Positions 2,640 to 8,809 of a stretch of DNA of 64,000 nt are shown piece by piece. The position numbers were made by a program, and so were the translations under genes. Source of the DNA: Anaeramoeba ignava BMAN (lineage: Eukaryota; Protista; Anaeramoebae). Where the stretch lies: assembly GCA_028826165.1 (NCBI GenBank), contig JAPDFW010000058.1:1-64000 (forward strand), read 5' to 3'. Positions within the stretch are counted from its first letter, which is position 1, and each line of letters opens with the position of its first letter. A model generated the notes under the pieces. The model was not told where the DNA came from. It made no database searches and saw nothing but the letters and a program-made list of their open reading frames with translations.

Positions 2640-5460
2640 TCTAAGAATTGAAAGCCAATCAACAAACATCTTGTTTATTTTCACAAGAAATAATAGTTCT
2701 ATCTTTTTCATCTTGTTTAGGAACCAAAACAAAAGAATTTTTTTTTAGAATCAGAAGGTTTAGCAAAAACATTCTAGTTTCAGTATCAAGAAAATAACAT
2801 CAATAGGAGAAGAAAAAGATCATCATTATTTTTCTGAAAAACAGCTTAAATAATAAGATTTCAAACAATATATCTTTTTCCATCCTAATTTTTTGTTTTA
2901 TGTTGAATAACGGTGTTTTCAGTTGAGCTGTTAAATTATCAAGCCAAGAATTTAATAAACTTGATTCAACTCTTGTGATTTCTTTTGGTTTTTCAATCTT
3001 CTTTGGTTTTTGTTTTTTGTTTTGTTATGATTTATTCTTAATTGTCTATTTTCATTTGAATTTTTATTCGTTTTTCGTTTGAATTTTTGTAAATTTTCAC
3101 TTGTTTTTCTGTTGATAATATTTTCCCTAATTCTGTTAATAATAATTGAATTGATGCAAAAACTTGTTTAATGATGATAAATTTTTAGGTTGTTAAATTA
3201 ACTTTTTTCAATTAATTGTTGTTGAATATTTAACCTAAAAGAAAAATTATTGTTTGAAAGTGATCCATAAACTATTTCTAATAAATTTGATGCAAAATCT
3301 TTCAGGATTCCAATTTTGTATCTGGAAAATAATTTAAGAAACTAAGATTTTGAATTTTTGAATCAATTCCCTGAAAAACTTCATAATATTAAAATTTTCT
3401 GAAAATGATTGATTAGTTTTTGAATTTCCTAAAATTTAAAATTTAAATTTGACCAAAATTTTTCTTTTTTAAATTAAATTTTTACAGAAATGGAAATGAA
3501 AAATTTCTTGTAAATAAAACATATATTTAAGAAGTAAATCATCTAAAGGAGATAAATATTCTGTTTCATTTTCAAAAGAAGCACCTTTTGATAAATTTTG
3601 AAAGAATAATGAAAAGATATATAATATTCTTTTTATATGTTGAGTTAATTGAACTAATATAAATAAAAATATAAAATATAAAGCAAATCAATTTTTGAAA
3701 ATTATTTTTTTTCATTTAAAAATTGTCCTTTGAAATTTCAAAATCTTGAGGATCTTCAAAACATTGAGTAAAATATGTAAAAAGAATATTCCAAATACAC
3801 AAATAAAGATCATCTTTGCAAACTTAAGTAAAGTAATATTTTTTTAAATAATAACAAATAACTTGGAATTTCAATAGGAATTGATTCCTTTTGAATTTAT
3901 AACTTGTTGAACATTCTCCAAATAATTGTTTTATATTACTGAATCTTTCCCAATAATTGATTTTGATTACTAGTATATTCTGGTTTTGGATCAACTTCCA
4001 AATAAAAACTTGTTTTTGATAATTTTTCAATAAAAATCTGATAATGAATCTTTCAAATAATTTGAATAAGTTAAAATGTATTTTAATAATATTTTTGTTC
4101 CAAATATCTATTGTTTGAAAAGTATATCTTGGATTTTCTCCTTGAAATACTTCTCCAAAATATAAAAGTTTTAATAAATGGCATTGTAACTCAAATGTCT
4201 AAAAATCAAATAAAAAGGTTGAATCAATATATGAAATTGGTTTTTTTTTCAAAAGAATTTCAATAAAAATAAAAATCATCTTCATTTAAAAACAAAGAAA
4301 GATATTCTTTTCTTTTTCAAATTTGATTGATTTGAATCTTTTCTGAAATGATTTCTGAATCTTTCCTGATTCTTTATTTCAAATTCAGATGTTGTTCTTT
4401 TATCACTTCTTATAATCATTCTTATTGTTTTCCAAATAGCTTTTTCTTTTGCTAATTGAACTATATTTTTGGAGACTAAAATTCCAAATTTTAAATTAAT
4501 GAAAAATTGAAAATGTCTTGTAAATTAAAAATTTTTACATCATTCATGTTTTTGTAATTTTAAAAAGAAGATATTGATTGTTCAACAAGTTAAAATTTGG
4601 AAACCAAAAATGAATTTTGAGATTGTAAACCAACTATTCTCTACTTTTCATTAACTTAGATTCTTTTTAAATAAGAAGAAAAGAATAAAAATATTTTTAA
4701 TTTTAAATAAAATTGTCTTGAATTGTTTTGTGAAAAATAATGATGTTAATTTATGAATAATTTGCATTTAAATGTGAAAAATAAAAATTATTAAATAATG
4801 CTTGTAAAGAACGATAGATATTAATTTTATTTGTTAATTTTTCATTTGAAAGTGTAAGATTAATTTGATCTAAAGTATGGAAAATCATTGAATCATTTTT
4901 GATCAAGAAATGTAATCATATGTCTAATTTTTCAATCTTGAATCTGATAACGAGAAGTTGTATTTTATTAATAATTGTAAAATATAGTTTTTTATAAAAT
5001 TTTTAAATTAAAATATCAAATAATCAATTTATTGAGTGATTTTTATATTATTCCAAAATTCTCATCAAATTTATTTACTTTTGATTTATTAATAAAGGAA
5101 TTTTTAAAAAGGAATTTAAATTTCATATATATGTCTTCTTTTTAAATCTCTTAAAAATAAAAGAGAAATTTTAGACTTCTTTTTAAAATAACTTTTTGAA
5201 TCATATTTTAATCAATCAAAATCAAAAGATCAGATTTTTCATTTTTGCTTTTTCTTCTCCTTTCAATTTGTTTTTATCGATAATTCAATTATAAAATATC
5301 TTTACATATTAGACATTTATATTTTGATTGAAGAATCAATTTTTTCTTTAGTTTTTCTTTTTGAAATAAGATCAAGAAGAAGATTTTTCCTTTTCTTTTT
5401 TTAATTAAATCAATGTCCACTTTTTGAGGATTTCAAAAGGAATTTTTGATAAAATCTCAA
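2640..5460 (-). pseudogene. Frameshift-riddled RasGAP/IQGAP-like gene fragment with C-terminal PH domain (pseudogene or unpolished assembly)
   Basis: Minus-strand peptide fragments stitched across indels: YLEVDPKPEY (~3970-4000), LSKGASFENETEYLSPLDDLLLKY (~3525-3595, GRD-like), and PH-like LGWKKIYCLKSYYLSCF..SPIDVIFL..KPSDSKKNSFVLVPK..RTIISCEN..DWLSILR (~2640-2890). No long ORF survives. Confidence 0.4.
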
Positions 5461-5476
5461 TTCATTTTTCTTTTAA

Positions 5477-8309
5477 ATGAAGCTTTTTATTCGTTTTCAA
5501 GGAAATTTTTGTGTGTTTGATGCTGAAAAGATCCTAAACTTTAAAACCTTAATTAAAGATGTGAAAGATAACTTCAACATTCGACAAAAGATTCAAGCAT
5601 TCACCTATCTCTTTCAAGATAAAAACTGTTCGTATTTCAAACAATTCACAACTTGTAATCTTCTAAATTGTGTTAAAAGAACAAGTTCTTCTAATAACTT
5701 CAGAGGAAATTCCTATTTTGAATGTTCAAATCTCTATTTCAAAAAGTGGAAAAGAAAGTGCCAATGAATACTCAAAAATGATCGATCAGGATCCATTTCT
5801 TTCATATGATTTAGATACACAAAAAGTTTTTGTTCTTCTTGTGATAAGGAATTGAAAAATTTAAATTCATGGAAGCTAAAAGAGACATTTAAATTGTGAA
5901 CATCATCGTTTTAAGATTCCATTTTACCTAAAATCTCAAACAAAATCAAAAGAATGGGTTTTCACAAATCATGAAAAATATCCTTCGAATTTTAGATCAT
6001 TTAGAAACATTTACAACGATTGATTTTTACAGCAGAAAAGATATACCTGTTTTCCGCACAAGTTTGACAAAAAGACTTTTTAATCAAATACAGGATAAAG
6101 AAAATGATCTTAAATATGGGACTTTCTGCTCACTTCTTCAAAAAGTATTTTTCAATTCATTCTGCAACAGCTTTTTCCAGTGTCCAAAAATGTTCTAATC
6201 CAATCATGAAAAAGGCAGAATCACCAAAAGAAAAGTTCTTGAAATGAGAAATTTATACAAATCGGAAATTCAACTTCTTGATCAAATTATTTTATTCTTG
6301 GACTTTGCAGTCAATTTTCAAGAGTATCGAGATAATTGGGAAACACAAGAATTCTATCATAAGAAATCATGGTGATCTTCAATATTACTATTCAGTTTGA
6401 AAAACAGTTGTTCTATTTCGATTATATTTCAGGAGAGGATCAAACTAAAGTAAGTTTAAAAATTGAATTCCTTTTTGATTCTATTAATTTTCTATTTCTC
6501 TTATAGGATTCCCAATTTGTTCTTCAAAGTTTTCAAGATTTTCGATATAAATTCCATGAATGGCAACATAAAAGAAATCTATTAAACATATCAAAACTAA
6601 GGATTTTTTCTGATAATGGAGGACACATTAAAAATAACTTTGTTCTGGGGATGATTTTTGATGCTTTTAGTTCGCAATTTTTAGATATTAAGGTAATTTT
6701 CTTTCTTAGAAACCATGCTAAACATATGTCTGATCGTCATTTTGGTAACATATCAAGGAATAAGGCAAATTTTGGGGATATTACAACTATTAATTTACTT
6801 TTTGATTATTTATCTCAACTTAGTAACACAACACCAATTATTTTGAATGTGAATAGAGCACTCAAATTTCTTTACAAGAATCCAATTGCAAAAATTAAAA
6901 AATCACACATTTTTATTTTCTTAAAAGGAAACTTGAAAACTGCAAGAATGCCAAACACCAATTTTCGAAAAAGAAGAATACCTATAATTGAACAAATTTT
7001 TCAAGAGAAAGAATTTGGAATTAAACAAAATTCAGCATTAATTCAGGAGAATTATTCTATTCCTTTCTTTAATACTCAAATGACAAATTCCAAAAATGAA
7101 AAGGTGATTCCAAATGAAACACAAAAATTTCATTCGCAAAGAGAAAAGAAGATGAAGGAAATGAATCATATGAATGGAAATCTACGAAGTTCTTCCAGAA
7201 AACATCAACAAATCAAGAGAAAAATTGAATTTGAAGAAAAAGAAGAAATCAAAAATTTGCGCATTTCAAAATTTCAAGATAATCTCCCAAAACAAAAGAA
7301 TTTTACATCATCAATATCCATTTGCAAAACAGGAGTAAGAAAATTCTTCTTTTTATTATTTTTCTTTTTGATTTTCTCATTTTTAATTTTTGATTAGAAT
7401 TTAAGAAAGATTCCAAATTCACACAATTCATGTTATATCGCTTCCATCATTCAAGTGCTTTTAAGAACTTCTGTAATTGAACTATTAGGTTTAGGTGATA
7501 TTTCTGAAACTTTGAGCGATATTTTACAATCTTCAGAAGAATCGATTAATATAACTCCACTAAGAAAGGTAATAGGAGAACATGTGACTCAATTTTCCAA
7601 CAACACTAATGAACAAGATATACATGAATTTTTTGTTTCCTTGATGGATTTAATATCAAATGAGAATATTTCAGATTTCAATGTTTCATATGATCTTCTT
7701 TATCAAGAATTTGATATTCACAATCGAGCTATAATAAATGATTTTCGCATTCGTATTGTGCAAAAGGTGACATGTAAGAAATGTAAAAGATTTACTTACT
7801 CCTTTCCTCAAGAAACAAGTCTTGTGATTAGCTTTCCAATTTTGAACGGAGAAATTAGCATTTCTTCAATGCTCGATAATTATTTCGCTGAAAAGGATTT
7901 AGATTTCTCTCAACATTATCACTGTGAAAATTGTGACCAAAAAGTAGAAAGCTCCATTAAATTGTCTCTTTTGACTATTCCTAAATATTTGGTTATTTTT
8001 TTCAAGAGAACTTATTATGATTCCTTGACTCGATCTACAACAAGAATTGGAACCAAAATTCAATGTGAAGAAAAGATTAATGTCAAATCTTTTATGTTTC
8101 AGAGTTGTCCTAATCAAGAAACTGAAATGAAATTGCTTGGATCAATACACCATATTGGAAATGCCAATGAAGGTCATTATTGGACTGAAATCTTAGAAAC
8201 CAAAACTAGTTCAAATTTTTTTGGAATAAGTGATGCTCATATATTTCCCGTGAATCCTTTTAGAACAGAAGATACTTTTACAATGATGATTTTTACAAGA
8301 GAAGATTAA
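5477..8309 (+). mobile_element. Sola-like DDD transposase gene fused in frame to a USP/peptidase C19 deubiquitinase domain
   Basis: N-terminal C2H2-like finger CSSC..RHLNCEHH (~5830-5906, across 1-nt indels). Catalytic motifs LDFAVNF (D at 6301), IFSDNGGHIKNN (6604-6639), FFLRNHAKHMSDRHFG (~6700-6745). GT-AG introns 6450-6506 and 7335-7397 join ORFs 6651-7397 and 7455-8309 in frame. The 5' part has several homopolymer frameshifts. Confidence 0.75.
7398..8309 (+). CDS. Ubiquitin-specific protease (peptidase C19) domain, last exon of the transposase fusion
   Basis: Cys box NSHNSCYIASIIQ, EQDIHEFF motif, fingers-domain CKKC and CENC, PKYLVIFFKR, His box HHIGNANEGHYW and FGISD. Confidence 0.9.
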   Translation, partial: NLRKIPNSHNSCYIASIIQVLLRTSVIELLGLGDISETLSDILQSSEESINITPLRKVIGEHVTQFSNNTNEQDIHEFFVSLMDLISNENISDFNVSYDLLYQEFDIHNRAIINDFRIRIVQKVTCKKCKRFTYSFPQETSLVISFPILNGEISISSMLDNYFAEKDLDFSQHYHCENCDQKVESSIKLSLLTIPKYLVIFFKRTYYDSLTRSTTRIGTKIQCEEKINVKSFMFQSCPNQETEMKLLGSIHHIGNANEGHYWTEILETKTSSNFFGISDAHIFPVNPFRTEDTFTMMIFTRED

Positions 8310-8809
8310 GAAAAAATAATCATTCTTTCTATTCCTTTTTTCTTTGACAAGAATCTAATTCATTTTTCTTTTTTTTTGATTTTTTTTGATTGATTTTTTT
8401 TGATTGATTTTTTTTGATTCAATTTTTCTTGATTCAATTTTTCTAATTCTCAAAGAAATAAACCTTTATCGTGCCTCAGGAAGCACCAAAATTTGAGGCT
8501 TTTATCGAGATTTCTTGTTCAATTTTAATTAAAAAAGGGAAAAAAAATAAACAAAAAAAAATTTTTCACATCAGCCTCAAATCACTCATATTTATTTTTA
8601 AATCAATTTTGAATTAATTTAGATAATAAATTCTTTTTATAAATTATATAAATAAATTATTTTACATTTTAATTAACATTTTCTCTTTATTTTTTTTTAT
8701 AATTTTGTTTTTGAAATTTTTATTTGATTTTTTCTTTTTATTTTCTTTTTATTTTTTTAATTTAGAAAAAAAAAACAAAAAAAAATGAAAAAAAATGAAT
8801 AAAAGTTTT

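Follow-up and report, generated by a model that had tools for sequence, protein, structure and literature searches.

A probable cut-and-paste transposon of Anaeramoeba ignava with a Sola2-like DDD transposase joined to a USP deubiquitinase

The window analysed here covers 64 kb from the start of contig C59 in the 42.8-Mb Anaeramoeba ignava genome. At positions 5005-8592 (+ strand) it carries what is, with a probability of roughly 0.8, a copy of a cut-and-paste transposon that has been mobile recently and is present in few copies. Its single three-exon gene encodes a PB1-like beta-grasp, a BED zinc finger, a DDD RNase H-like transposase core of the Sola2 type, a Lys/Asn-rich linker and a USP (peptidase C19). 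The copy was delimited by blastn against the five other copies of the same group (subfamily A), by alignments of the copy ends, and by genome DNA searches with both ends; it is truncated on its 5' side. Labels such as C1, C24, C40 and C59 denote contigs of the A. ignava genome assembly. The order transposase exon 1, exon 2 and USP is kept in subfamily A and in at least three further lineages (B, C40 and C26), which share 21-45% protein identity with subfamily A, and C40 and C26 are represented by one element each. These data show that the fusion of transposase and deubiquitinase is old and conserved across diverged lineages. A chance pattern is ruled out, because open reading frames (ORFs) of 296 and 303 codons occur at 20-28% G+C, a Pfam match reaches 1e-24, and six near-identical copies exist. 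In the window, G+C is 7-15% in intergenic DNA and 27-39% in coding parts.

Translations placed exon 1 at 5477-6449 (+), where 327 codons are open on C1 and the reading frame is disrupted in the window copy; this exon holds the PB1-like beta-grasp, the BED zinc finger, a CxxC motif and the first catalytic Asp. It is followed by a predicted intron 1 (6450-6506, +; 57 bp, GTAAGT...TAG, phase 0, with an in-frame stop), which was absent from a first-pass annotation of this DNA and which the GenBank model of paralogue P0015 splices at the same position. Exon 2 (6507-7334, +; 276 codons, open) encodes the remaining RNase H-like core and the Lys/Asn-rich linker, and is 99-100% identical to the C1, C128 and C24 copies. 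The predicted intron 2 (7335-7397, +; 63 bp, GTAAGA...TTAG, phase 0, containing a stop) links the transposase to the USP, and its removal joins ...ICKTG to NLRKIPNSHNSCY; the sequence features of a 63-bp, phase 0 GT-AG intron, as first described, were borne out here, and the same junction is used in GenBank model P0023. Exon 3 (7398-8309, +; 303 codons and a stop, open) encodes the USP, with a Pfam PF00443 match over 7398-8306. Exons were searched separately, and the full-length GenBank proteins P0001, P0015 and P0023 were used in place of a joined spliced protein.

The motif series DFAVNF, DSQFV, FSDNGGHIKN and FFLRNHAKHMSDRHFG, from which the transposase was originally recognised, is present in the window, and DFAVNF lies in a different frame from the later motifs, which had gone unremarked. 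Three predicted catalytic Asp residues were located on the + strand from nearly invariant alignment columns and a fold model: the first (LDFAVNF, predicted strand beta-1) at 6301-6303, the second (FSDNGGHIKN, after beta-4) at 6612-6614, and the third (NHAKHMSDRHFG, where the helix that follows beta-5 begins) at 6732-6734. An exhaustive HMMER search of 1.84 billion proteins with the core of a relative on C142 returned 232 homologues, mostly unnamed metagenomic proteins together with Diplonema ambulator transcripts. Almost no variation is seen in three acidic columns, which correspond to D306, D389 and D429 of P0001 and are spaced by 82 and 39 residues, or in the blocks W.D and HGK...D..F; the transposase of subfamily A has drifted from HGK to HAK. 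A Pfam scan gave no match for the transposase core. The AlphaFold2 model of residues 130-560 of P0001 had a mean pLDDT (predicted local distance difference test) of 84.7, exceeding 90 across the core, and showed the topology beta1-beta2-beta3-alpha-beta4-alpha-beta5-alpha with the three Asp at canonical positions. When this core model was used in a Foldseek search, exclusively RNase H-like proteins were matched. Furthermore, exhaustive structure alignment gave Metnase at Z 12.3 (root-mean-square deviation, rmsd, 2.9; 166 amino acids) and Mos1 at Z 12.1, followed by retroviral integrases at Z 9-11 and Sleeping Beauty at Z 9.7. The RNase H-like fold, which the first-pass annotation had predicted for this region, was thus recovered by the model and by the matches to Metnase and Mos1 at Z 12.

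Placement of the core within a transposase superfamily was examined by comparison with published Sola elements, which, as summarised from Bao et al. 2009 in PMC10741241, have a DDD transposase, 4-bp target duplications and inverted repeats of 11-1124 bp. The published core blocks of Sola2-1_HM are GDFAENY, E.Q..HW....S.L, ISDD.THD..YV, FTDGCAGQYKN and NFFATSHG (PMC3985635 supplement), and the consensus of the A. ignava family reads DFKEN, E....F......S.LG, S..L.HDS.FV, WSD.G.HF.N and N.F.EYHGKS.CD.HFG. By eye, against this one published alignment, the five blocks are common to both, in the same order and with near-identical spacing. The cores of Sola1, Sola3 and Zator in the same supplement fit the motifs worse. 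The family is therefore best described, from its motifs, as Sola2-like and not as a proven member; the earlier Sola-type assignment agrees best with the motifs, those of Sola2 in particular, and is in keeping with the ATAT flanks described below. A less likely placement is that the core represents a separate, unnamed DDD superfamily, a DUF7869-related clade found in metagenomes and Diplonema, with the rest of the interpretation unchanged. PF25273 (DUF7869) is the nearest named family by shape (TM-score, template modelling score, 0.71) and by language-model features; 17 of 94 homologues touch PF25273, some above its cut-off (P0032, for example, with 27.2 bits against a cut-off of 26); and the nearest structures are mariner-type transposases and integrases, while Majorek et al. 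placed Sola with RNase H1. However, the five ordered blocks match Sola2-1_HM (DFxEN; E..aromatic..S.L; S...HD..V; (S/T)D.G...(F/Y)KN; NFF..HGK), the other Sola groups and Zator do not fit as well, and the ATAT flanks suit a 4-bp duplication, which together make a separate superfamily unlikely.

Exon 3 matched the Pfam family UCH (PF00443) with an E-value of 8.5e-25 (88.2 bits against a cut-off of 23.9), and the USP of the C40 element matched with 3.9e-38 (131.9 bits). The catalytic Cys (NSCY, 7431-7433), the catalytic His (EGHYW, GHY, 8175-8177) and the third catalytic residue, Asp (GISD, 8232-8234), are all present on the + strand, along with a QDxHEF box and two CxxC pairs, in agreement with the complete USP domain first reported. 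The closest solved relatives of exon 3 are USP9X, USP21, USP8 and USP15, at E-values of about 1e-7. Like the cellular USPs (USP9X, USP21, USP8, USP15 and USP46), the transposon domain has the catalytic fold, including a Cys box, a His box and zinc-ribbon 'fingers'; unlike them, the A. ignava transposon USPs form a clade of their own, lie inside inverted repeats, and resemble the cellular enzymes only at an E-value of about 1e-7. In a small-sample tree that included four host USPs, the transposon USPs grouped together with support of 88/94; for this tree the two exons of the C26 USP were separated by X. It could be argued that the domain has been retained as a catalytically inactive module for ubiquitin binding or scaffolding, since the Cys box of subfamily A is atypical (NSHNSCY and not GNTCY) and the transposase of that subfamily has also drifted at its HGK block. 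However, this is improbable, given that a Cys box is retained in all lineages, that the Cys, His, Asp, QDxHEF box and both zinc CxxC pairs are kept down to 21% identity, and that the C40 element has a textbook catalytic set (GNTCF / GHY / DD). Retention of the catalytic set over such deep divergence implies selection on the element for the USP domain.

The ends of the element were determined by aligning copies; in a generic search for inverted repeats, AT-rich noise predominated. Subfamily A has six copies on six contigs (C59, C1, C128, C24, C105 and C80), 95-98% identical across the element and about 99% identical in the coding part, and the full-length element is about 3.8 kb. The five copies outside the window carry perfect 13-bp inverted repeats, AATATGAGTGATT / AATCACTCATATT, and have unrelated flanks, and on C1 and C24 all three exons are open (327 + 276 + 302 codons). 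In the window copy the sole inverted repeat is the 3' terminal one, AATCACTCATATT, at 8580-8592 (+), and the ATAT at 8588-8591 is a probable target-site duplication. Subfamily B has five copies (on C96, C48, C90, C93 and C105); its ends and those of the C40 element are related (ATATGAGAGA...) and ATAT-flanked, with termini of the same type (ATATGAGAGATT... / ...TCTCTCATAT) and inverted repeats of about 10-12 bp. ATAT lies directly outside the GAG(T/A)G...C(A/T)CTC termini, on both sides, in all 10 of the 10 full copies of subfamilies A and B. ATAT is palindromic, so a TA duplication or a longer inverted repeat is also compatible with these flanks. The copy count and shared ends that the first-pass annotation had suggested looking for were thus found, as six near-identical copies, five of them with perfect 13-bp inverted repeats and ATAT on both sides.

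A domesticated fusion gene had been offered as an alternative to a mobile element, and a host gene family of this kind, spread by segmental duplication and not mobile, would be in keeping with the GenBank annotation, with the low copy number, and with the genome DNA searches with both ends, which found no short non-autonomous derivatives. In GenBank, KAJ5079105.1, KAJ5069497.1 and KAJ5069443.1 are plain 'ubiquitin carboxyl-terminal hydrolase (22)' entries that mention no transposase, and their gene models use the splice junctions described above. However, in five copies homology breaks off precisely at the perfect inverted repeats and the flanks are unrelated, the copies are dispersed, the end motif is kept across lineages at 21-45% protein identity, the copies are about 99% identical in their coding parts, and several carry disabling indels. 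Such a host family is accordingly very improbable.

Several minor features of these loci were also recorded. At least nine of the 10 full copies lie inside AT-only tandem-repeat arrays, with the identical repeat unit on each side (flanks on C1, C128, C24, C105, C80, C96, C90 and C93); this location may reflect a preference for ATAT targets, survival in 'safe' DNA, or both. A (TTGATTGATTTTTT)n-like minisatellite, at 8369-8449 of the window, stands 3' of the USP stop and is common to subfamilies A and B, and further occurrences are scattered over dozens of other places in the genome (83 matches). At C73:208480-211821, exon 2 is present twice in tandem, each time incomplete and with 67-73% identity to subfamily A, together with a USP fragment; this locus is an older, decayed subfamily. 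The GenBank model on C105 bypasses frameshifts by means of invented introns.

The junction between transposase and USP was further assessed in the diverged lineages. In the C40 element, a single uninterrupted ORF of 567 codons, with no junction intron, covers the latter half of the transposase together with the USP, and the fusion is therefore independent of the predicted splice. An in-frame fusion, as first proposed, accordingly holds for the family, with open copies on C1 and C24 and a continuous ORF on C40, and does not hold for the window copy, which is truncated and frameshifted. That the transposase and the USP are two separate proteins, through an unspliced intron 2 or a promoter of the USP's own, is the least probable alternative, because although the stop inside intron 2 would end the transposase in an unspliced mRNA, the C40 ORF is continuous over the junction, intron 2 has canonical GT-AG ends, lies in phase 0 and is divisible by 3 in length, no ATG precedes the Cys box in exon 3, and GenBank gene models use the identical junction. 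The relative on C142 is a 1168-amino-acid ORF (L053:3796-7302, - strand) that has the same transposase core and no USP; it includes long Asn/Gln repeats, and its C-terminus is a CCHC zinc knuckle. Word-indexed protein searches outside A. ignava returned a sole match, the Logan metagenome protein P0161 (758 amino acids, E-value 1.6e-25, no Pfam domain), and in the searches made, no fusion of transposase and USP came up beyond this species.

The N-terminal part of the protein was modelled from a paralogue. The first 96-codon ORF (5477-5764, +) corresponds to a predicted PB1-like beta-grasp in the AlphaFold2 model of P0023 residues 1-112 (pLDDT 81.5, built from just six sequences), which matched the PB1 domain of MAP2K5 at Z 11.9 (rmsd 2.0, 85 amino acids), NBR1 at Z 11.0 and p62 at Z 8.6; ubiquitin scored about Z 7, below the PB1 domains. 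A Pfam scan of the intact exon 1 gave no PB1 match. A weak Pfam match to Crinkler-N at the N-terminus (E 0.011) was also considered, and the PB1-like beta-grasp explains this region better. PB1 domains oligomerise, a property that would fit a transposase. Downstream, a BED-type zinc finger (CxxC...HxxxxH) at 5810-5920 (+) is split over two frames by an extra A at 5878, and in the intact exon 1 of C1 the zf-BED model (PF02892) scored 21.5 bits against a cut-off of 20.6. The C2H2-like finger and CPKC motif described in the first reading of this region are present as letters, and they can be read only by frame hopping, because the frame of exon 1 shifts repeatedly; an extra A at 6186 splits CPKC.

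The copy in the window is damaged. Its gene pieces are spread over three reading frames across 5477-8309, as seen in translations, with at least five reading-frame changes within 5477-6449. The window copy differs from the intact C1 copy by 46 substitutions in 2.9 kb and by 17 indels, and all 17 indels fall in runs of A or T. Two indels of the frameshifting type lie in non-coding DNA 5' of the ATG and one 3' of the stop, and the sole indel relative to C1 in exons 2 and 3 is one in-frame CAA insertion. As assembled, the window copy cannot make the full fusion protein or be cut at its 5' end, because it is both 5'-truncated and frameshifted. The assembly was built from Nanopore R9 reads and polished with Racon, Nanopolish and Pilon (PMC11550330), and it should be noted that some of the damage, including the missing 5' repeat, may stem from the assembly. 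The homopolymer indels of exon 1 may in part be Nanopore errors left uncorrected, given that the copy sits 5 kb from the contig end and inside a repeat. Over 5042-6657, the initial 1.6 kb of the window copy, homopolymer indels far exceed substitutions. The pattern suggests that polishing was locally poor near the start of C59, and further genes within the contig's first few kb may therefore be affected too.

Taken together, the copies, termini and domains favour a mobile Sola2-like element; however, several observations weigh against this interpretation. The window copy is homologous to the element from position 58 onward, and the terminal 57 bp, including the 5' inverted repeat, are missing. 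Its coding frameshifts, about 12 in number, fall exclusively in exon 1. PF25273 has no match among the A. ignava proteins or in the genome. The assignment to Sola is drawn from motifs and from ATAT flanks that are themselves ambiguous, and the transposase tree is compatible with a single USP acquisition that it does not firmly resolve (support 60/87).

In a working model of the element, the transposase would excise the transposon and reinsert it at ATAT sites, and the USP in the same polypeptide would remove ubiquitin. The most likely substrate would be the transposase itself or its partners, which would thereby be protected from proteasomal degradation; chromatin or repair factors at donor or target sites are less likely substrates. 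The functions first suggested, removal of ubiquitin from histones and protection from BTB-Cullin3 degradation, remain conjectural. Through its PB1-like domain the transposase probably oligomerises. We tentatively propose that a working C19 deubiquitinase has been permanently welded to the transposase as a countermeasure to ubiquitin-dependent host restriction of transposition, with the PB1-like domain oligomerising the enzyme, though this is less likely to be right than wrong.

Other mobile elements carry related activities. The cut-and-paste transposons MULE and CACTA carry Ulp1-like (C48) SUMO protease domains, which are cysteine proteases acting on a ubiquitin-like modifier; these belong to another clan than USP, act on another modifier, and are usually encoded by a separate ORF that is not fused to the transposase. 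Helitrons and Helentrons carry OTU or VTD deubiquitinase domains, which were proposed to shield transposition proteins from degradation (PMC9741609), and protection of the transposase by the USP is proposed here by analogy with these domains. Similar to the A. ignava element, the deubiquitinase of Helitrons and Helentrons lies within the transposition protein of a DNA transposon and its catalytic residues are conserved (PMC9741609); in contrast, those elements combine a rolling-circle RepHel protein with OTU or VTD, whereas a DDD transposase is combined with a USP of the C19 class here. The element resembles Sola2 transposons in its DDD transposase, its short inverted repeats, which fall in the reported 11-1124 bp range, its five core blocks in the same order, and its flanks, which a 4-bp duplication would fit. 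Unlike them, it adds a USP at the C-terminus, a PB1-like domain at the N-terminus and a BED finger, is very divergent, with no match to the related Pfam model, and resides in a metamonad-related anaerobic amoeba. In the papers searched, no DDD/E transposon was described as carrying a USP.

The deubiquitinase described here belongs to the best-understood class (USP) and shares a polypeptide with a small DDD transposase; it has been retained through deep divergence in one genome, where the C142 relative offers a USP-less comparison. If the anti-restriction interpretation is true, a USP-class 'anti-defence' module would be described for the first time on a DDD/E transposon, and the element would offer a compact system in which to ask why mobile elements carry deubiquitinases. 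In addition, the public annotation, which presents these elements as host ubiquitin hydrolases of the ordinary kind, is corrected, and a divergent Sola2-like family is added from a little-studied eukaryotic lineage. Elsewhere in the genome, at C75:49787-61588, several polyubiquitin genes with canonical 76-amino-acid units were found within 12 kb.

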